The notes under the pieces are model-generated. The model did no database searches. It was given only the letters and a program-made list of their open reading frames with translations, and had not been told where the DNA came from. DNA of 58,246 bases from Trichosphaerium sp. ATCC 40318 (taxonomy: Eukaryota; Protista; Tubulinea): assembly GCA_038496445.1 (NCBI GenBank), contig JALMLS010000260.1, positions 1 to 58,246 of the forward strand, given 5' to 3'. A program made the translations under genes and the position numbers. This document shows positions 24,662 through 57,021 of this stretch, piece after piece; the first letter of the stretch is position 1, and every line of letters begins with the position of its first letter.

Positions 24662-25697
24662 TTATTTATTCTTTTCTAGACAAATACAAAAATGATGAAT
24701 AAAAGTGTTTGCAAAGTACTTGAACCAACCACATAAAATACCATGAAACATCCGTAAAGGAAAAAAGATCGTGTTGAACGATCTTATCAATAAGCTACTA
24801 CTTCTACTTTGAGTACCAAAGTGGTGTTTTTTCCTTCTTGATTTGAACCATCTCCTTACCTCATCATTCGCTTCTTCAAAAGGCTCTCCATTCTCAAGCC
24901 ATGTTTTCTTATCAGTTAGCTTACCATCAACCATGGTGGCCACTGACCAAAGTTGCCCATTTTCATACCACAGCTTAGATTCACCCTTTTCTTTACCATT
25001 TACAAAAGTCGCTTGACTGTTAAGTTGTCCATTACTATACCAGCATTTGTATTCACCGTTAGCTTTACCATCAATCCATGAGCACTGTGACGAAAGTTGC
25101 CCGTTTTCAAACCAATATTTGGCTTCACCATTTGCTTTACCATCAATCCATGAGCACTGTGCCTTTAGTTGCCCGTTTTCAAACCAGTTCTTGAATACAC
25201 CATTCCGTTTACCATCAATCCGTATGCCATGCACCCTAAGTTGTCCATTCTCATAAAATGTTTTACTAATGCCATGTTGCTTATTATCAGCGAACATGTA
25301 CTTGTATTCTAAGTTGTCCAGTTTCATACCATTGTTTCACTTCGCCATGTCGTTTACCATTGACCCACATCCCATGTTCCTTAAGTTGACCATTTTCATG
25401 CCATTCTTTGCCTTCACCATGGCGTTTACCGTCAACTAACATCCACTGTGACCCAAGTTGCCCATTCTCATACCAACTTTGATACAATCCAGTCTTTGCA
25501 TGTCTATGGGTGTTGACTTTTCCGCTTTTATACCATCTGATCCATTTTCCTTTCTGTTCTAACGATTCATTGAAATGTGTACTTATTGCTGCTCTCCTTG
25601 ACAACGTATGGAACTTTGTGAATGTTTCACAATTGAAAGTACAAATGTACTGTTGAATATCACTTGGAAGATCCAACAAAGTCAACGAAGAAGCCAT
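24662..25697 (-). pseudogene. F-box-like + MORN2 (YwqK-like) repeat gene, family B copy 1, with a +1 frameshift
   Basis: LLDLPSDIQQYICTF then ~23-aa WYENGQL..W.DGK..GE.K repeats. One extra base at ~25302 relative to copy 2 splits the ORF (real lesion or sequencing error). Confidence 0.8.
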
Positions 25698-26496
25698 TGT
25701 AAGCACAAAAACTAAAATAAAACGTAAGGACAGTTTCACAACAAACATTGCAAGTGAGAAGTTGAATCGTAAATTCAATTCCAACACTTTACGCAAATCT
25801 TACAACAAACAAAAACAACAGCAAGAGCGCTTCGCCACGTGCTTGGCTATTCGAAAAGGATGGCCGTTACTACGGTATCGTTTGATAACCAAAGGCGACT
25901 TCAGGACTTTAATGATAGGGTAAGTTGGTGAGTTCACAATTTTAAGGAGTTTAGAATGTAATAGTTTCCCAAACGCCGTTAAGAACGTATTTTGAGTGAA
26001 CCAAAGGATTTGACCCGAAATAACGCTATTTTGTTTTAGCGCTAAGCCTGATTTTTCAGGAGGGTTTGTGAGCATAGGTAACCTTGTGCAACTCTGCAAG
26101 CTACACCGCTAGTGTATCCTTATGAAGTACTTCACATGAGTATAAAAGCTGAAAGTCACGTGCGTGCTACAAATCGATAGTGGCCTTTTACAAAGTAGGC
26201 TTAGCGCTACAATACAATAGCGTTATTTCAAAACAAATCCAAAGTGAGGTATGCCAGGACAAAAAGCATGTATGAATACGTACGATTTGAATATAGAAGC
26301 ACTTGTGACGGCCTTTTGGCAAAGCAATGCCTAGACTTACTAAACGACCAGTGAGTTTAGAGCTGAGAAAAATACAATTTTACGTCAGTAAAATGTTGTG
26401 TGGTTACATACCTACTTGCGTTATTCGTTGTGCAGTCTGGTATGGTCGTTGTGTTATGACTATAACTTAACTAACTTTAGTTTGTAGCACGTGACA
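24662..26496. repeat. Inverted dispersed duplication of the family B gene plus upstream DNA (partner 45836-47545)
   Basis: Near-identical across the 5' coding half; diverged but alignable upstream blocks (e.g. aacttaactaactttag, gagttcacaattttaagg) ending near a CACGTGACA motif. Confidence 0.85.
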
Positions 26497-45771: not shown

Positions 45772-46435
45772 TTAGAGCAACGTTTGTTGAGATTGCTGAG
45801 AATAGGTTAAGGCTTAACTTTTAAGCTGTACAATGTGTCACGTGTTACACAAGCTAAAGTTAGTTAAGTTAGAGTCACAATACAACGCTCACAAGACTCC
45901 ACAAGGAATAACGCAAGTATGTATGTAACGACATAACATTTACTAACATAAAAGTGGTTTTTCTCAAACTGTAAACTCACCAATTGGTTTAGTAACTTCA
46001 GGTACAGCGTCGCCAAAAGGCAGTCTAAAACACTTCTCTACATTCAGGTCGTACGTATCCATGCTTTTTGTCCAGGACATACATTACTTTTGTTTCATCA
46101 ACAAAATCAGTTCTAGTGCGATTGTCAAACTGTTACATTCTAAACTCACCTTAAAATTGTGAACTCAGCAACTTACCCTTGGTAACATCTTTGTTAACGA
46201 ACGATACCGTAGTGGTAATGCGATCTTTTACGTAAATACCCAAGCACGTGGCGAAAACGCTACTTGCTTTTTTTTTTGAGTGCTTAGTTTCTTTCTTGTG
46301 TGTCCAACGTAAGACGCACCTTTTTCTTGTAAGAATTTGCGTAAAGTGTTGGAATTGAATTTACGATTCAACTTCTCAGTTGCGATGTTTGTTGTGAAAC
46401 TGTCCTTACGTTTTATTTTAGTTTTTGTGCTTACA

Positions 46436-47539
46436 ATGGCTTCTTCGTTGACTTTGTTGGATCTTCCAAGTGATATTCAACAGTACATTTGTACTTTCAA
46501 TTGTGAAACATTCACAAAGTTCCATACGTTGTCAAGAAGAGCAGCAATAAGTACACATTTCAATGAATCATTAGAACAGAAAGGAAAATGGATCAGATGG
46601 TATAAAAGCGGAAAAGTCAACACCCATAGACATGCAAAGACTGGATTGTATCAAAGTTGGTATGAGAATGGGCAACTTGGGTCACAGTGGATGTTAGTTG
46701 ACGGTAAACGACATGGTGAAGGCAAAGAATGGCATGAAAACGGTCAACTTAAGGAACATGGGATGTGGGTCAATGGTAAACGACATGGTGAAGTGAAACA
46801 ATGGTATGAAACTGGACAACTTAGAATACAGTACATGTTCGCTGATAATAAGCAACATGGCATTAGTAAAACATTTTATGAGAATGGACAACTTAGGGTG
46901 CATGGCACACGGATTGATGGTAAACGGAATGGTGTATTCAAGAACTGGTTTGAAAATGGGCAACTAAAGGCACAGTGCTCATGGATTGATGATAAAGAAA
47001 ATGGTGAAGCCAAATATTGGTTTGAAAACGGACAACTTCGTATGCAAACCACATGGGTCAATGGTAAACAAAATGGCAAAGCTAAGGAGTGGTATGAAGA
47101 TGGTCAACTTAAGTCAGTTGGTACATGGATTGATGGTACATCAAACGGTGAATCCAAATACTGGTATAGTAATGGACAACTCAACGGTCAAGCGACTTTT
47201 GTAAATGGTAAAGAAAACGGTGAATCTAAGGTGTGGTATGAAAATGGGCAACTTTGGTCAGTGTACACCATGGTTGATGGTAAGCTAACTGATGAGAAAA
47301 GATGGCTTGAGAATGGAGAGCCTTTTGAAGAAGCGAATGGTGAGGTAAGGAGATGGTTCAAATCAAGAAGGAAAAAACAACACTTTGGTACTCAAAGTAG
47401 AAGTAGTAGCTTATTGATAAGATCGTTCAACACGATCTTTTTTCCTTTACAGATGTTTCAAGGTATTTTATATGGTTGGTTCAAGTACTTTGCAAACACC
47501 TTTTATTCATCATTTTTGTATTTGTCTAGAAAAGAATAA
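46436..47539 (+). CDS. F-box-like + MORN2 (YwqK-like) repeat protein, family B copy 2, intact and intronless over the repeat region
   Basis: MASSLTLLDLPSDIQQYICTF followed by ~10 MORN2-type repeats in one uninterrupted ORF. Confidence 0.85.
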   Translation: MASSLTLLDLPSDIQQYICTFNCETFTKFHTLSRRAAISTHFNESLEQKGKWIRWYKSGKVNTHRHAKTGLYQSWYENGQLGSQWMLVDGKRHGEGKEWHENGQLKEHGMWVNGKRHGEVKQWYETGQLRIQYMFADNKQHGISKTFYENGQLRVHGTRIDGKRNGVFKNWFENGQLKAQCSWIDDKENGEAKYWFENGQLRMQTTWVNGKQNGKAKEWYEDGQLKSVGTWIDGTSNGESKYWYSNGQLNGQATFVNGKENGESKVWYENGQLWSVYTMVDGKLTDEKRWLENGEPFEEANGEVRRWFKSRRKKQHFGTQSRSSSLLIRSFNTIFFPLQMFQGILYGWFKYFANTFYSSFLYLSRKE

Positions 47540-47716: not shown

Positions 47717-50700
47717 TTATACTGGTCTTTTGGTTTTTTGGGTTGTGCTTACTACTCCACGCGGTAGCAAACAGCTTTTATCTGCCTCATCCATGAATGC
47801 CACGACTGTACATTTGTAGCACGAAATGTAAGCAAAGTATCTTTCTTTTGTTTTGGATTTCTAGCACGAAGTTTAAACATGTTTTGTGATTCCATCTGCT
47901 CTAAAATATATCCTTTCAAGTCATAGAATACAGAAGGATTTTGCTATGATACGTTAGCTCTGAATACACGAGTGGTGGATGTTGAAGAGGGAGGGGCATT
48001 TGAAAAAAATCGTACGACATTGGATGATTTAAATGTGAAGAGAGTCGTTTTCTTGAGACGGAAGAAACCACTTCTCCATTGACCCTTCTCCCATCTTTGA
48101 TACATTAAAACGCCCTCACATTTTGTTGCAGCGTAAAAATCAGGCCGTGTTGGTATAGATGTAGTACGCCGTGACTAAAAAATTAGAACTTGCAAACTTA
48201 TTGTTATACCAAAAGTACGTACAATTTGGCTCCTTGCAGCCTTAGGTGCTGATGCATGGATGCCACTGAGATAGTGCAACTATATGGTGTAAATACTTTC
48301 AAATTTTATATGCACGTGATTATCACGTGGTTTTTTAGTAATGGTACCCAGTTCGTTTTTTCAAATTCTGATGGGCAAGAAAGAACTTTACATGCGTTTC
48401 CGTCTTTGTTACATAACGACCATATCATAACATGTTTGACTCCGCCTGTAGATGTATAAGAAACTATAAAGTGTATATTTTAATGAATAGCGTACCTAGT
48501 ACCTCTATTGGAGGTACATCAAATACTTTAATGTCCGTGTCAAAAACGAAATAATTTTCTTGTAGAATGGAGCTATGTGGGTTGACAAACAACACTAGAT
48601 CGTTAAATAGGTAGCACGTGTAATCTGTTGAAACATGTTTTTCTCCTTCTACGTTATGTTCTGTTACCATTCCTTGTTGTACAAAGCTTCTTCCGGTGCG
48701 TTCAAGATTCTAATTTTAACAAGTAAGAAAAAACCTGGAATTGATTTTTTCAATTGCTTTTTTGTGCTCACCAAAAATTCTGCTTTCTTTACTGTCTGGG
48801 ATATTGTAACGACTTTCTGTCTATTCCGCTCCTTTACGAACATGTTTGTTGTTTTTACCATATTACTATCAAGTGTAGATAGGCAATCCTCTATTAAATT
48901 TCTGTATGTGGAGTCTTCGGGCTGACTTTTAAGCATTTGCTGAGAGTTGTTAAAAAAAATTGACAAAAAAAAATTATCAAGTTCAACTAACCTTGTGGAG
49001 CAATATTATCTTTGGTCCATGCTGCACCTTATGAAAGTATTAACACTGAATTAGAATATATTAGTAAGCTGTGTTCATACTGGAGCTGAAAGTAAACTTT
49101 CAACGGAAAGATCTATCCTATCTTTTGATGTTGAAGAGTTTAGTGCTTTCCACGCTTGAGACTCAAATTTCTCAATCCTCTAAGTGGCATATTAGGAATA
49201 AATGCAAAATACAACATTTGTGTTATGAATTCAAGGTACCCTCAAGTCCTTATCCAATACTCTATTTTGCAAACGACATTGCTTTAAAACATGCTGTGAT
49301 TCCAAGTAGTTCTACATGAAAATAAGTCAAAGAAAGCTGATAGATTAAGTACGAACGTCTTGGTCTAAGAATGGCCCATATGTGAGTAAATAATCCAATT
49401 CTTTGTTAAAAACCTCGGCAAGACATCTTGAGAATCCATGGTGTTGAACATGATCTTCAAGTTTTACCTTTAGAAAACGACTTTAGAAATTTGGTTTCTG
49501 TGTTTGAGGTGTACCCAGACTTGTTTTGTACTACTATAAATACTGTGTATATTACCAAATATTTGGTCTAGCGCCTCATTACTCAAGCCATTCTTTTTAT
49601 CACCTTTAAGCGCCAAAAAGTATCTCTACACTAATAAGTCAAGGCACGTGTTACAAAAGCATGATGGTTTTGTTTTTTTAATTTTCAACTTGTTAGAAAA
49701 CCGTACCACTAGAAGTATCTCCAGTTTGTGTACATAACCTTTAAAGTAGTTATAAATCTCTAGATAAACCAAGTACAATTCATCTTCTTTTGGTTTCTCA
49801 GCCTCAACCTGTGACCTTTTTTTTTGTAAGAAAAATGTACTCAAACAAAATAAAATCTTACGCTAGAAGCTTAGAGCCAAGTCTCCTTAAAGTTTCGAAC
49901 TCTGGATTGGTAGCGTTATTCTCGTTTGCTCTATTTATGCCTACTTGTGTTGTACTATTCATGCGTATCATTGGAGGAGAACCTCTCATGAGAGGCAGAG
50001 GTATTTTTTGCTGGACAACCTGTGTTGTACTGTTTATACGCCTCATAGGTGGAAGATTAGGTTTCTTTGGAGAATAGCTTGGTGGTAGGTTTGTAACAGT
50101 TGCCGATCGTTTGGGTGGAGTTGCAGGAACTACTGAAGGTGGAGGGGTGTTAGGAATAGGCGGTGCACCTTTTGGACGAGAAGGTGGAGCTGTTTTAGGT
50201 GAAGAACTATTTGGGGTGAGCACGACAAACGGGTTTAGGAATACAAGTAAGCTTGGTACCTGCCATTTCCTACAACCTGATTGCTTGGTTTCTTGAGCTT
50301 AGGTGGATTGACAGGAATCATCAATGTAGGTACACCATTCTTGGGCATGGGTGGACGTGGTGCAGGCTATAGCAGTGATTATTAAGTTTTGCAATTTATT
50401 TATCGACTTAGTATTTCAGGCGTACGTTGAGTGGAATACTTGGCACTGATTTTGTTGGTCTTTGTACACCAACTCTCCTTGGTTTTTCTATTGATGGTGC
50501 AGTGACAGATCGCCTAGTGTTGTATTTGTAAGGAAATATTTTGAGCAATCTAGATCATACAAAAGAGGGTTTGGTGCTGGTTTTCCGGGAGGTGGTGGCA
50601 AATGATCAGCACTCTGCTCTTTTTGGTCTTCAGCGCTCTAGATTGTAGTTGAGATAAAAGAAAACTAGAATGCATAAAAGTTCCAATACTTACAGCAGAT

Positions 50701-52803
50701 GATACAGAGCTGTTACGATCTGAAGTATTGGAACTTTGATCCTCTTCTACTGTTGGTGGTATGCCTGGTTGTCCAGCTTTTCCTCCAGAATTCAAGCATT
50801 GTACAAAATCGTTGAGGTGTAAACTCTTTGCAAGGTCCAACGCAGAATCAGATTTGCCTCAGCGAGATGTAAGAAAACACATGCAAAAAGAAGTTCAGAG
50901 AAATGAGAAGATAAAAAACAATGAAAAATTGTGTCAAACAAATCAAAAGTTAATGTCTTACCTAGCTCTCCTTCAAAAGTAGTAAATGGGTTGGCTCCAT
51001 TTTTTAGAAGAAGTTTAGTATGGTCCATCAAGTTATTTTGTATCGCCCGATGTAAAACAGTTTTACCTTGCCTGTAAAAAAAGTTTTAGTTTTTTTTTTT
51101 AATACATGGCTTAAAATATCATACTTGGTGTGGGCGTTTGGGTCTGCTCCATTTTTAAGTAATAATTGCATAACGAATAAAGGACATCCCACGTGAGCAG
51201 CTTGGTGAATAGGTTTCTCATCACTCGTTGTTGTGCCTGTGTTTATATCTAATCCACCACGCAGCAACAAAGCGAAAACCTAATTTTGTTTTTCTGGTAA
51301 GTTCATTTATTTGTTTCCATGAAACATACCTTTAAAAATTGTAGTATGAACGTAAGCGTTATCTCAACGTTTGTGAATAAAATTAAATAGTGAAGTGGCG
51401 TGTGTCCAGATGCAGGTACTTTTGTAGGATCAGCACCAGCCTCTAAAAGAACAATCGCTTTTGCCAAACGCCGCTACAATATAATAAGTATTTTAAGTTA
51501 TAATGGTTGGTGCCTCGTGTGTGGATACACACGCCAATAGCGGTGTTACACCATCGACTCCAGAAGTCGTATTTACATCACCGGGTCGTAAAGCAACGAC
51601 TGCTGTAACATCATCTATAGTTCCGTTTCTTACAGCCTCTAGCAGACCACCAACCTTTTTATGCTTAGCATAAACGTTAGTTGCATAGACGGCGTACCTT
51701 GTTGAATGAATTGTCAGTAAGCGTTGCTCTATGCGCTTGTTTACTAGTCTTTAGTGTTGCATAACTTCCAGAACCAGTGGCCCTACAGGAACTGATTAAC
51801 AAAAATTGTTATTTAAATACTATGTCAACTCACTTGCGATTGAATGAGCTAACGCTCCATGATGAGACATCACTACTAGTCCGATTATGCTTCACTGCAA
51901 CTGGTACATTTGTCTTAGGAATCTCTATACGATAATTAATAAGGTTGTGACAAATACAAGCACGTGATAAATTAGACTTTACCTCTTGGAGTTGAAAAAT
52001 TGATTTCGTAAGTGTTCAAATCGCCTAAAGTCTTTTCAAGATCAAGCTCTTCTTTTGTTTCAGCGTCAAGTGGTATGAAAGCGTCTATCTCTATATCACG
52101 CCTAAAAAATTTATCAATTTTCACTAAACGGCCTTTTTCAGAACCAAATTTACGTGTTTGAGTATTAAAGGCTAAAATCACGTGGACACAAAAAAAACTT
52201 GGCCCAGTACAAAAAAAATAAAATTACTTTGTTTTTATGTTACATACCGTAGCGCACATACCCTCTCTAGTACTTGTCGTAGTACTAGATGTGGTTTAAA
52301 CAATACGACTTGTTGTTGCGCATTAGGTAAGTAAATACGGATGAAATCTTGAGAGGTGTTCGGTCGCGCTTAAATGAACTCTGTTAGAATACTATGATCG
52401 TAAAATAAAAGAAAAATGACTTCAAGAAACAATCTCGGTATTTCTCCAAACACGATGTGCAAAAAAGACAATGTTTAACATAAGTGACTTGGTAGAGTTG
52501 TTATAACCATTGATTTTTGATCGTTGTGACGAAACGTGGTGGTTCAAACTGGTTTTTTTGAATTTCCGTGATTATAATTTTGTGCTGTGTTTTTAAACGT
52601 ACGAGGAGACTCTGCTTCTTTAGCTGTTTTTGTTCCTTTTACTCTGCCAATAGTTTGGCGTAATCTCTTGTTACTGACTTGTCCTACGCGCTTTGCGAGG
52701 TTCTAGCGCTTATGAGAATACAATACCAATGGCAGTTGTAAGAAAAGCAAACCTTAACCCTTATAGACCCTCTGTTTTGCTTCTTTGTATTGGGATTGCT
52801 CAT
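47717..52803 (-). CDS. Multidomain signalling protein: Raf-like Ras-binding domain, ankyrin repeats, Pro-rich region, divergent DH (RhoGEF), PH, PH
   Basis: FIRIYLPNAQQQVV (RBD); LLKNGADPNA (ANK); PPSRPKGAPPIP; DQIFGNIHSI and SLLSAPVQ (DH); YLFNDLVLF and EGVLMYQR..WRSGFFRL (PH). Confidence 0.85.
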
Positions 52804-53028
52804 ATGCGCCACAAGCGTTGTAGACGCATGAAACAAGACCGAAAAATACGCTGTGATCACCGGAGCAGACAAATGTGATTTGTCTCTGCTTTGACATCCT
52901 TCGTTGTTTATGAATTATACAATAGTGCAACTACGGCGTAACGTAAATAAAATACAATTGTCACAGACAGAATTATCTAGTCAAAACTTAATCGTGTCAT
53001 ACAAGTACAAATAAAGTACATCTTGGCG

Positions 53029-56000
53029 ATGTTTTGCAAGTGCCATCGTGGTTTAAGCCCGATAGTGGCTTGGAACTCACGCAGCTTTCTCAAATTGAAA
53101 ACTACGCGTTCTAATCAACGGAAGGCACCCATTGCGTGTTATAATAGCCTTGTATTAACAAATAAACACGTAGGCTTCTGTACGCAATGTAAAACGCGCC
53201 AGCTCATCTTATGAAACTCACGCGTATACAAATGATGCTGCGATGGATGAAGTAGAATCTAGTGCAAAAGAATTATTAAAAGAAGTAAAGGAGCCCAACT
53301 TACGCCTATTCGTCACTCATTCTCAAGGTACACTTGTTCTTTAGCGTAAATAAATTATAAACAATATCAGAGGAAGCAACAGCTATTGCAAGAGCATTGG
53401 ACCTACCTGTAGATACAAAAAAACGCGCTACAGGGTTTTACGCATCACAAGAATCGCCTTCCGTACGTTTCTTCGTTTTATTCTCAAAACACATCCAAAT
53501 GACGCTAAAATCGTATTATTAATAGGATGTCGTGTTTTGGACCAATGCAAGTGCTTCATTGGATATAATGGACACGGTAGACCAACCAGGCATTCCAGCA
53601 TTGCCACCTAGACTTACGCCAACCTTCCCAGTACGCCTTGGCCTTGCAATTTAATTGTACAAAGTTAACCGAGTTTGTAGCGTAAGTATGCTGATGAAGC
53701 TTTACTTCTCCACGCGTTTGGTCAAAAGTCAAAGGGTACGAGATACGTTTACCTTTGAAATTTTTTTTTGACACATTGTGACACGTTTTAAATTATATTT
53801 CATTTAATTTTTGAGTTAGAGATTTTGAACGCATTTGAACCTACAGAACAAGGCGAGATATATTTTAGAGATTTTTTTAGCCTTGATAAAGACTTGCAAA
53901 AATCCAAGAGACTTTGGCTTACTTCACTTGCACCAAAGAAGGGCACTTTGAATAGGTTTGATTTTTGGAAAAACCTTTTTTTTTGCTAAACTGTCTGTTA
54001 GTTTTATTTTGGACAAAGAGCGACCTGACTTGTATTCGTTTGGCAAAACCGCCCGAGAAATGGACTGGCTAGCTTTTTTTAACTTTTCTGAGCTTTGCTC
54101 GTCGTATTGGCAGGAACGTAACGGTGGAGCATGTCCTATAGGTACTTCAACGAGTTTCTTCTTGTTGTAAAAACTTATCTTGTGCATAGGTAGAATTGAA
54201 GCAGTTGTATTACACCTTATCACCAAGAGGTTTCAAGAAACCGAAAATGCAAACCTGTGCGTTGGATCAGTTGTGATAGAGGTATTAATTGTCTTGACAC
54301 AGGAGAAATATGCCGAGGTTTGGGTCAAAGCAAAGATAGATGATAATACCATTCCACTACGGTATGAAGGCCGTGTGGGTGATATTGAGACAAAAGGTCG
54401 AGTGTTTGACACTAACGAACTTTTCGAAGTTCAAGCAGGAATTAAAGGTTGCGTAGTTGTATTCTGTAGTGAGTTAACAAAGTTGTAGCTGATGCCACTG
54501 TAAAGGAATTTAAGATTGTTAAAACTGTAAGTATAGAATATATCATTTGTGATCTTCCTAACACATCATTTTTTCAAAGCTTGTTCAACCGCCATTGCTG
54601 TTTGATCTTGCACAACTACAAAAGTCAATGTATAATAAGTATCGGTATACACTGAGCCAAACTAGAGCAGTACTAAAGGTACATAAATGACATGACATGA
54701 TAGTCACCTTTAAGGTTATCGTTCTTACTAGTCTCGGTAGAAACTCTACTCTTGTGGGCTAATCACGTTTCCTTTTACAACGTCACGACATTTGCCTTTG
54801 ACGCTTACCAATACTATACGAGAGACTCTAAAGTAAGTGATGCACCTTACTTTTGCAAACAGCTAGTTGTACTTATTTTTTTCCTCTAGAAACGCAAAGA
54901 ACCTCAAGAAGCTAAACCGAACCGCAACAACTGTAAATAAAGATAATCTGCGCGTATTTAGCGATGTTCAAGGAAAGGATGACCTACATGCTATCATACC
55001 AATATTGCGGGATGACTATAAAAGAACTTTTCGTGCTCTTACCAAGGCAGAGAAGGTAGTGTTTGGCGCTATTATGCAACGATTTATAGGTACTCCATGT
55101 CAACACTACAAGAGATTTAACTTTTGTTTCACAGCTGCATTTATGCCAGCCGCACAAGAGACGCATGAACGTTTAGAGATTGTTAGCAATGATGAATTTG
55201 TATTTGTAAAAGAGAAGGTGTTTGAAATATATCCTGGGTGGCGTGCTATGGATGGTAACAGTGTAGATACAGACCCAGGTATGCAATGATTTTATAAAAG
55301 TACGTTTGTTGATTGTTTGTTAGAAGATTTTCTGCCATTACTGACGGAAGGAGATGCTGTTGAACTCAAAATCCCTCCAAGGACAGTAGTACGTTCTTGG
55401 CTTTTATTGTATTGTCAAGGGTATTTACTTGAGCTAATTATCTCAAAAGACTCGTGAAACATCGGTTCCTGGATTGTATAATGATGCCACTATCATAACA
55501 GCAATGCAAACGTATGCAAAAGATAGTGAAGAAGATTTTGTTGAGCAAAAAGGTAAGTAAATACTCGGGTTTCTATGTTAACTTTGTATAGGTCTTGGCA
55601 CTCCTGCCTCTCGCGTAGAGATAGTTAATAGATTATTACATGAAGGTTACATAAAACGTACACTTGATGGGTTTGTACCTACACACAAGGGTAACAAAAT
55701 GAACGAACTCCTTCAACATGTACGCTGTCACCTTTTTATATCTTCAAAAGTTATTAAGCTTACATCCGATAGGTGGATGTTGTCGATGTTGAACAAGTAG
55801 GTGTTTTGGAAGACAAATTGAAAGCAGTGATGGCTGGTGCAGCTAAATCAGAGGAAGTGCTGGATGATTACCGCCAGTGGATAAAGGTTCTTTTTAATTT
55901 GTGTTTCCACAAAAATATTACTGTTCTTACTGTTATACAGGATAGTATCACAACGTTCAACTCTAATCCAATAGAACTTGGAGAATTCACTCCATTACAA

Positions 56001-56832
56001 ACGAAGAGAGAGCGCACTAACAAGTCTAAAATAAGTTCAGACTGTGAAGGTAAGTATTAGGTTCAATGTAATGTACTCTAAATATCTACCTCTAGAGCAA
56101 TGCGAAATTGGTGTTGGTAAAAAATCATACTATTGCAATGTCCCTGGATGTGATTTTTACTTTATGAAGTATCAATACGGTTACACAATATCTAAGGTTC
56201 GTTGAAAAGATATTTTTGTGTGACCACTTCACAAAGATTATTTTTAAAACATGTTGTTATGCTTGATTATTAGTAGCTCACTCTTGGAAGTACGCCTTTA
56301 ATAACTCCGTATTAGGACATGGCAGATGATATTTTTTATGACAAGAGGTCTGAGCATGTTGGTGGTTTGAGATCCGCTAATGGAAAGAGATTCGGTGGAT
56401 ACTTTTTTGTTGATAGCAAAGAGAAGAAGGTGAAGCTCCAGTTTCAACCTATGAGTCCAAAAGAGACTTCTGGAAAGTTCAAAAATGCATGGACCTCAGA
56501 GAGTAAACACAAAATCAGAGATGACATATGGCCCGACGAACAAGGTAACAAGGGGAAAAATCTTAAACATTGTATGATTGACTAACACGTGCATTTTAGA
56601 GTTTGTAGAGAAAGAACGACAACCACACAATCCAAAGACAGTGTTACAAGTTGCTCCACTTGTTCAAGAGGACAAGCACATCCATGAATTTAAAGAAGCT
56701 CAGGAAAATAGCAAGGCTAAAGCTTTTGAGCATTTAATGAAATGGAACAGGCAATCTAAGCGGCAGATGGCTAATAAGCGAGAGCAAGTCTCAAGGAGAA
56801 GACAAAACGATCGTTATCAAGATCATGAATAA
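53029..56832 (+). CDS. Bacterial TopB (topoisomerase III)-like type IA topoisomerase homolog, predicted catalytically inactive, putative mitochondrial presequence
   Basis: Collinear motifs AIARAL, NAFEPTEQGEIYFR, KRLWLTSL, DWL..FN, IGRIE, PPLLFDLAQLQK, LYSCGLITFPFT, HAIIP, GLGTPASRVEIV.RL...GYI, CDF..K/GLRSANGKRF C-terminal repeat; many spliceosomal introns. Confidence 0.88.
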
Positions 56833-57021
56833 AAAAAACTAATAACAGACGGTGTCTGCCAGATCCACTGTATTATACATAATGGTCTTTGTTGCATGAA
56901 CTCAGTAATGATAAATTTTTTTTTCTTTGGACTTTTTTATTTAGTGCATCTCAATTGTGTCACGTGACGGAGATAAATAAATATCTAGTAAATATCTCCG
57001 TCACATCGCAAGTAAAATAAT

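Follow-up and report, generated by a model that had tools for sequence, protein, structure and literature searches.

A gene on the forward strand of contig JALMLS010000260.1 (assembly GCA_038496445.1) of the tubulinean amoeba Trichosphaerium sp. ATCC 40318, which extends from position 53243 to position 56832 of the 58,246-nucleotide (nt) stretch analyzed here in full (hereafter, the window), encodes an intact homolog of bacterial-type DNA topoisomerase III (Topo III) in which the residues required for DNA cleavage and religation are replaced. There is good support for describing this gene as a real pseudo-topoisomerase, i.e., an intact homolog of bacterial-type Topo III that is catalytically dead. 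The explanation that we favor, with somewhat more confidence than doubt, is that this is a nuclear amoeba gene derived from a bacterial-type Topo III that has lost catalysis and is likely to perform a non-catalytic role on nucleic acids.

A spliced homolog of bacterial topoisomerase III

Reading of three forward frames of the region 52950–56900, with exons joined by hand at GT..AG sites, yields a minimal model of 20 exons and 19 introns, the latter all GT-AG and 39–119 nt long. Translation from ATG 53243 to the stop codon at 56830–56832 gives a product of 840 amino acids (aa) from a coding sequence of 2523 nt. The GC content is 40% in the exons vs 25–40% (mostly about 30%) in the introns, and tblastn searches of the whole window with the product and with its bacterial relatives identify a single copy of the gene. 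The splice sites of the 19 introns (53328–56599) have an unusual flavor, with GTAC donors in 9 of the 19 and TAG, not CAG, acceptors in 14.

With a profile of 41 bacterial Topo III sequences that are diverse among themselves, the 840-aa product obtains 263 bits, and residues 83–747 are aligned with high posterior probability, spanning the DxxREG motif (the second half of the TOPRIM domain), the toroid core and the C-terminal module. In pairwise phmmer comparisons, the model scores 28.6 bits with TopA and 64.7 bits with TopB of Escherichia coli, and 76–99 bits with three plasmid Topo III; the best bacterial and prophage Topo III reach 124–138 bits. Scores of up to 138 bits are obtained with proteins about 900 aa long whose annotation is DNA topoisomerase III and each of which contains the PF01131, PF01751 and PF13342 domains. 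The reference set for these comparisons consisted of TopB and TopA from the annotated E. coli K-12 record, the three plasmid proteins, 120 bacterial Topo III collected by a profile search, and 71 loci from a scan of viral contigs that encode more bacterial-type Topo III. The plasmid proteins were reached through tblastn matches of exons to plasmids, found only at E = 0.3–5, which served as a route to the full-length bacterial sequences. A preliminary description of the locus, made from the sequence without database searches, had proposed an intact, spliced homolog of bacterial-type Topo III, and both the frame that stays open through 19 introns and the profile match bear this proposal out.

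Pfam searches started with single exons detect Topoisom_bac (PF01131) in exon 16 (E = 5.6e-7) and in exon 10 (E = 0.012), in both cases under the gathering score because the exon pieces are short (30–85 aa); apart from these two weak matches, neither TOPRIM nor PF13342 is called on single exons. Sequence searches of the PDB with exon pieces find no topoisomerase. In the ESM Atlas, exons 12–13 come close to bacterial Topoisom_bac fragments, with sub-threshold scores, and nothing is found with the exon that encodes the C-terminal repeat. The use of a single-exon alignment to TopB as a profile query was abandoned, the alignment being meaningless.

Loss of the catalytic residues

The catalytic positions were assessed in a MAFFT alignment of 27 sequences, the amoeba protein and 26 bacterial enzymes (E. 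coli TopB numbering is used below). The exon that begins at 54741 reads KLYSCGLITFPFTTSRHLP and places Phe (TTT, 54768–54770) opposite the nucleophile Y328, Phe (54774–54776) opposite R330 and Thr (54780–54782) opposite the Asp of YPRTDS, exactly the three substitutions that had been noticed initially and that the alignments together with the codon reading confirm. No alternative exon coding for YPR(T/S)(D/E) is present in any frame of the window, so that a transcript restoring the YPRT motif from within the window, which the preliminary description had considered, finds no source there. The DxxREG motif of the TOPRIM domain is converted to ExxEQG (D103E, R106E, E107Q), and the AEKPS motif of the first TOPRIM strand is replaced throughout (A6T, E7H, K8S, P9Q, S10E). 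The latter comparison depends on the register of the N-terminus: a sub-profile of the N-terminal bacterial region sets THSQEEATAIARAL on AEKPSvArdiaaal, in the same register as MAFFT, with a score of just 1 bit that is equaled by 48 of 2000 shuffled sequences. The first half of the TOPRIM domain is thus recognizable by eye yet degenerate. Of the claim that the TOPRIM motifs are erased, the part concerning DxxREG stands with high posterior probability, and THSQ does appear opposite AEKP, in a register that is weakly supported.

Other near-invariant positions are replaced as well: GHL (G43A, H44S), GRVQTP (V198I, Q199E, T200A, P201V), R165A, R178E, E321S, K324G, E338L, T527S and E533N, along with the first His of the HHAIIP motif of E. 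coli (H381L), the remainder of which is kept. Given that the Tyr nucleophile, its Arg partner, the TOPRIM acidic residues and this His are all lost, formation of the covalent DNA intermediate and strand passage should be impossible.

Altogether, the amoeba protein retains 54 of the 104 near-invariant bacterial columns, and the retention is uneven: 40 of the 63 hydrophobic, Gly, Pro or Ala positions are kept vs 14 of the 41 polar or charged ones (Fisher p = 0.0048). Hence the losses hit the chemistry of the enzyme rather than the scaffold, in agreement with the original observation that the scaffold is preserved, and the type IA fold would be expected to be retained. Among the groove positions, the equivalents of D169, N175, R197, T524 and R528 of TopB persist.

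The C-terminal module and the charged tail

After four Cys residues that compose a predicted zinc ribbon, the C-terminal unit reads ..CDFYFMKYQYGYTISKDMADD..GGLRSANGKRFGGYFF..KVKLQF. In the alignment to the profile, the posterior probability is high both for these Cys residues and for the G(F/L)xSxxGKxF...F core and, scored alone against about 200 bacterial sequences, the C-terminal piece obtains 22 bits (E = 2e-6). The bacterial TopB-style C-terminal repeat that had been recognized by inspection is therefore real, even though PF13342 is not called by Pfam on the isolated exon. Neither the Pfam searches of the exons nor the profile alignment reveals zf-GRF or zf-CCHC fingers in the C-terminus. 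The C-termini of eukaryotic TOP3 enzymes contain zf-GRF, zf-CCHC and Topo_C_ZnRpt fingers, and the C-terminal repeat domains of type IA enzymes are treated as nucleic-acid-binding modules (PMC9369019). The architecture of a zinc ribbon followed by a Toprim_Crpt repeat, unlike the TOP3 fingers as described in that work, argues for a bacterial-type ancestor.

The Crpt-like unit is followed by a charged tail that includes KRQMANKREQVSRRR (56758–56802). This string of the form KR-x10-RRR resembles a bipartite nuclear import signal (consensus KR-x10-12-basic) and might function as one. The coordinates of these elements and of the exons are compiled in Table 1.

Table 1. Exons and sequence features of the topoisomerase-like gene (positions in the window)
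Feature	Position	Strand	Remarks
Candidate first exon	53029–53169	+	47 codons beginning with ATG; 9 Lys+Arg against no Asp or Glu; resembles a presequence, use unconfirmed
Exons 1–10 of the minimal model	53243–53327, 53371–53462, 53526–53630, 53681–53735, 53820–53955, 54002–54141, 54190–54447, 54489–54526, 54580–54678, 54741–54832	+	
Exons 11–20 of the minimal model	54890–55089, 55135–55278, 55324–55385, 55450–55552, 55592–55719, 55773–55886, 55941–56049, 56096–56196, 56316–56544, 56600–56832	+	
Remnant of first TOPRIM strand, LRLFVTHSQ(E)	53300–53327	+	MAFFT columns; His (53318–53320) at the position of the catalytic Glu of AEKPS
Degenerate TOPRIM acidic motif, EPTEQGE for D(P/A)(D/G)REGE	53837–53857	+	TopB, MAFFT and profile alignments; high posterior probability in the profile
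Dead active-site loop, LITFPFTTS for L(I/V)TYPRTDS	54759–54785	+	TopB, 26-protein and profile alignments
LHAIIP for (H/D)H(A/F)AIIP	54984–55001	+	H381L, remainder of the motif kept
Domain IV motif, (G)LGTPASR vs GLGTPATR in the family	55594–55614	+	Best single-exon Pfam match (PF01131, E = 5.6e-7) and profile alignment
Four-Cys zinc ribbon	56043–56151	+	Cys at 56043, 56101, 56134, 56149 (codon positions); the intron 56050–56095, confirmed by RNA, falls within it
Single Toprim_Crpt-like repeat, ..ISKDMADD..GGLRSANGKRFGGYFF..KVKLQF	56152–56444	+	Alignment to the bacterial C-terminal repeat; interrupted by intron 56197–56315
Charged tail, about 128 aa	56445–56829	+	No detectable relatives, no Pfam family

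Expression, relatives and divergence

Among public reads, the locus is partly present in one run only (X1, share 0.09), as four contigs of 151 nt, at depth 2–3, in exons 15–21; these contigs reach neither the active-site exon nor the 5' end. One of them omits exactly the intron 56050–56095 (46 nt, with GT..AG ends), so that the run holds spliced RNA of the gene and the gene is transcribed. The two listed differences between the contigs and the window, GCA>GCT at 55518 and AAA>AAG at 56483, are both synonymous third-position changes in the frame of the model.

A HMMER search started with the read-through of exons 12–13 (113 genuine residues including HAIIP) against a library of 1.84 billion representative sequences, which lacks the window's own open reading frame (ORF), identifies no real relative, where a relative with less than about 30–35% identity would be missed; two giant repeat proteins that were matched are spurious. 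Pattern scans of metagenome and viral contigs with the exons likewise yield no relative, and the single match (L078) is an unrelated phage-like protein that shares only the 8-mer search pattern. In a quick maximum-likelihood tree, the terminal branch of the amoeba protein is 7.8 substitutions per site long, compared with a median of 0.44 and with 5.1 for the TopA outgroup; the tree does not place the protein, and no donor can be named. Despite this divergence, the gene has 840 open codons and 19 intact splice pairs, together with the biased retention of residues and the difference in GC content between exons and introns, from which it appears likely that the gene has been maintained by selection, i.e., that it is domesticated.

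The N-terminus and possible localization

Upstream of the minimal model, the ORF 53029–53214 begins with the first ATG past an in-frame stop codon, and its first 47 residues have a net charge of +9. A stretch of 47 N-terminal residues with no acidic and at least 8 basic residues is found in 3 of the 126 ORFs that start with ATG and encode at least 50 aa in the six frames of the window. When all in-frame GT..AG joins are enumerated and scored with position weight matrices derived from the gene's own 19 introns, the best one connects the donor at 53170 with the acceptor end at 53290, and removal of this putative 121-nt intron would place the 47 residues immediately before EPNLRLFV, which coincides with the beginning of the bacterial enzymes. 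The donor of this join scores 6.3 and the acceptor 2.5, against minima of 3.9 and 2.6, respectively, within the gene; more than 10 other in-frame 5' joins can be made. A 33-nt intron, 53170–53202, can be dismissed, since this join leads into a stop codon. A start at ATG 53243 requires no intron and produces an acidic N-terminus with a net charge of −2. Thus, of the Arg/Ser/Lys-rich, acid-free N-terminus reported in the preliminary description, the ORF without acidic residues exists, and the splice that would attach it to the gene is unconfirmed.

Use of two alternative first exons is possible, and mitochondrial targeting through the 53029–53169 presequence is plausible but unproven. Judging from these N- and C-terminal signals, the protein might be directed to mitochondria (by the upstream presequence exon), to the nucleus (by the basic tail) or to both.

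Evolutionary scenario and alternative explanations

In the scenario that we consider the best, the ancestor would be a bacterial-type Topo III that consisted of the TOPRIM domain, the toroid core, a zinc ribbon and a Toprim_Crpt repeat. After entry into the eukaryotic lineage, the gene would have gained 19 spliceosomal introns and diverged enormously, with loss of the whole cleavage and religation set, namely the Tyr nucleophile, its Arg, the metal-binding acidic residues of TOPRIM and the His. The padlock fold would have kept its hydrophobic, Gly and Pro scaffold positions and some of the groove that binds single strands, and the four-Cys zinc ribbon with the Crpt unit would have stayed intact. 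Today, the protein would most likely bind single-stranded DNA or RNA without acting on it catalytically, or bring a partner to such nucleic acid. The homology, the domain architecture, the loss of the catalytic residues, the intact frame and one spliced junction are direct observations, to which the transfer from bacteria, the action of selection and the nucleic-acid-binding role, as a clamp or scaffold, are added as what these observations suggest.

Several observations weigh against this scenario. The RNA evidence is thin, and a second X1 contig, from 55449, is unspliced across the shortest intron of the gene (39 nt, 55553–55591) and runs into a stop codon; it could represent nascent RNA, intron retention or DNA, and the intron may be spliced inefficiently or, when retained, may truncate the protein ahead of GLGTPASR. 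Verification of the spliced coding sequence by RNA, as proposed at the outset, has thus succeeded for one junction and met with an unspliced contig at another. Residues 1–82 are not aligned by the full profile, and the groove residues R165, R178, Q199 and T200 are lost along with the catalytic ones; with a branch of this length and several groove residues gone, nucleic-acid binding is not assured. Finally, the searches found neither an ortholog nor a paralog, and purifying selection is deduced just from the open frame, from splice sites that remain intact and from which residues are retained.

Several alternatives have to be weighed against the scenario of a nuclear gene with a non-catalytic role. 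The one that deserves most attention, put forward in the preliminary description, has mitochondria take up this pseudo-topoisomerase by virtue of the 47-aa presequence, with the nucleoid, RNA or the mitoribosome as its targets inside the organelle. The acid-free, strongly basic composition of the upstream ORF, rare in the window, its start at the first ATG after a stop codon and the in-frame intron that would join it straight to EPNLRLFV speak for such import, whereas the lack of read coverage of the 5' end, an acceptor at the bottom of the gene's own range with many competing joins, the intron-free start with an acidic N-terminus, and the nuclear-import-like string in the tail speak against it; on balance, we regard it as a minority reading with a tangible chance of being correct. 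A mitochondrial clamp or scaffold is a reasonable hypothesis, albeit a rather unlikely one. In the most elaborate version, a bacterial Topo III captured by an amoeba lineage became a non-cutting clamp on single-stranded nucleic acid that alternative first exons send to mitochondria and perhaps to the nucleus as well. Such a protein, with a structural part in the handling of the organelle genome or of RNA, would be the first natural pseudoenzyme among the type IA topoisomerases; this version is conceivable, and we would not expect it to hold.

The extreme branch, the failure of the searches made to find orthologs, the very low read depth with one unspliced read, and an N-terminal TOPRIM half that has degenerated past profile detection would all be expected of a transcribed relic, that is, a transferred gene that has lost its function and drifts, its frame having escaped disruption by luck or because decay set in recently. 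Such a relic should hardly preserve 840 stop-free codons and 19 in-frame GT-AG introns through a divergence that exceeds that between TopA and TopB; moreover, the losses cluster on polar functional positions while the scaffold and the four zinc ligands persist, the exon GC content is clearly higher than that of the introns, and both scored polymorphisms are synonymous, so that we consider drift improbable. The loss of DNA-groove residues alongside the catalytic ones and the long charged tail without homologs would also fit a regulator that binds proteins, either a decoy or adaptor competing for the partners (helicases or SSB-like proteins) of active type IA enzymes, or a toroid platform subunit of another complex. 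For a protein of this kind no partner is known, and the best-preserved accessory part is the zinc ribbon with the Crpt unit, the type of C-terminal repeat discussed as a nucleic-acid-binding module (PMC9369019), which leaves this interpretation with a small share of our confidence. Residual topoisomerase or nuclease activity through non-canonical residues, for which the Glu that takes the place of the first TOPRIM-motif Asp and the retained Tyr339 of the LY motif could be invoked, is highly implausible, given that the nucleophilic Tyr, the Arg, the TOPRIM Glu and the third acidic residue of the motif are gone together and that in Exc, a Topo III-like protein, the Tyr-to-Phe replacement alone ends relaxation (PMC3809561).

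Neighboring features of the window

A perfect 12-bp inverted repeat, GTGACGGAGATA / TATCTCCGTCAC, with a 17-nt loop is located at 56964–57004, about 130 nt past the stop codon, and might form a hairpin at the 3' end or belong to a small mobile element. Exons encoding ankyrin repeats (LLKNGA.PN.. motifs) are found on the minus strand at 50550–51270 and at 1124–1561, opposite in strand to the topoisomerase-like gene and upstream of it; a common, divergent intergenic region of about 1–2 kb probably lies between the ankyrin-repeat gene and the topoisomerase-like gene. The window also contains a MORN-repeat gene in two near-identical copies in opposite orientation, 46337–47539 (plus strand) and 24662–25796 (minus strand), about 21 kb apart. 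The copies have in common the N-terminus MASSLTLLDLPSDIQQYICTF and a hydrophobic C-terminal tail, and the minus-strand copy is broken into two ORFs.

Comparison with known systems and implications

The closest known counterparts of the amoeba protein are the bacterial Topo III with a zinc ribbon and Toprim_Crpt (PF01751, PF01131 and PF13342; e.g., P0117 and the protein WP_070225056.1 of a Janthinobacterium plasmid), which have the same domain order. The homology starts at the DxxREG region, ends with the first zinc ribbon and Crpt unit and reaches 138 bits in pairwise comparison and 263 bits with the profile; it includes the common motifs LFDLxxLQ, HAIIP, GW and GLGTPAxR. The amoeba protein differs from these enzymes in that all catalytic residues are replaced, in its 19 introns and novel charged tail, and in the possession of one C-terminal repeat where the bacterial relatives have two or three; it is about 25–34% identical to the family consensus per domain and forms an extreme branch. 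E. coli TopB shares the same core, and the amoeba protein is nearer to it than to TopA, but TopB is active, its C-terminus is limited to a short basic tail, and plasmid and prophage Topo III outscore it.

TOP3A and TOP3B are, like the amoeba protein, eukaryotic type IA toroids, but they are active and, by their published architecture (PMC9369019), have C-terminal fingers and no Crpt repeat. TOP3A also has a mitochondrial isoform. Retention of a topoisomerase scaffold for a role beyond the ancestral catalysis is known from the Topo VI-B-like partners of SPO11; these, however, belong to the unrelated type IIB family, and are widespread and conserved, with known partners. The nearest functional precedent for non-catalytic use of a Topo III scaffold is the Topo III-like Exc protein of CTnDOT, in which a Tyr-to-Phe mutant shows neither DNA relaxation nor in vitro excision, and in vivo excision is not noticeably impaired (PMC3809561). 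Exc is bacterial and naturally active, whereas the amoeba protein has been inactivated naturally and completely, in a eukaryote; the comparison made here is a functional one. In the literature searches, no type IA topoisomerase that is intact but naturally dead was encountered.

If the gene is a drifting relic, it is a curiosity only. Type IA topoisomerases have been studied as enzymes and, if the amoeba protein works, it shows that the padlock fold and the zinc-ribbon/Crpt tail have uses without strand cleavage, which would bear on the suspected non-catalytic roles of Exc and of TOP3 complexes. The gene would, in addition, illustrate clearly how DNA transferred from a bacterium can be intronized and re-purposed in an amoeba.

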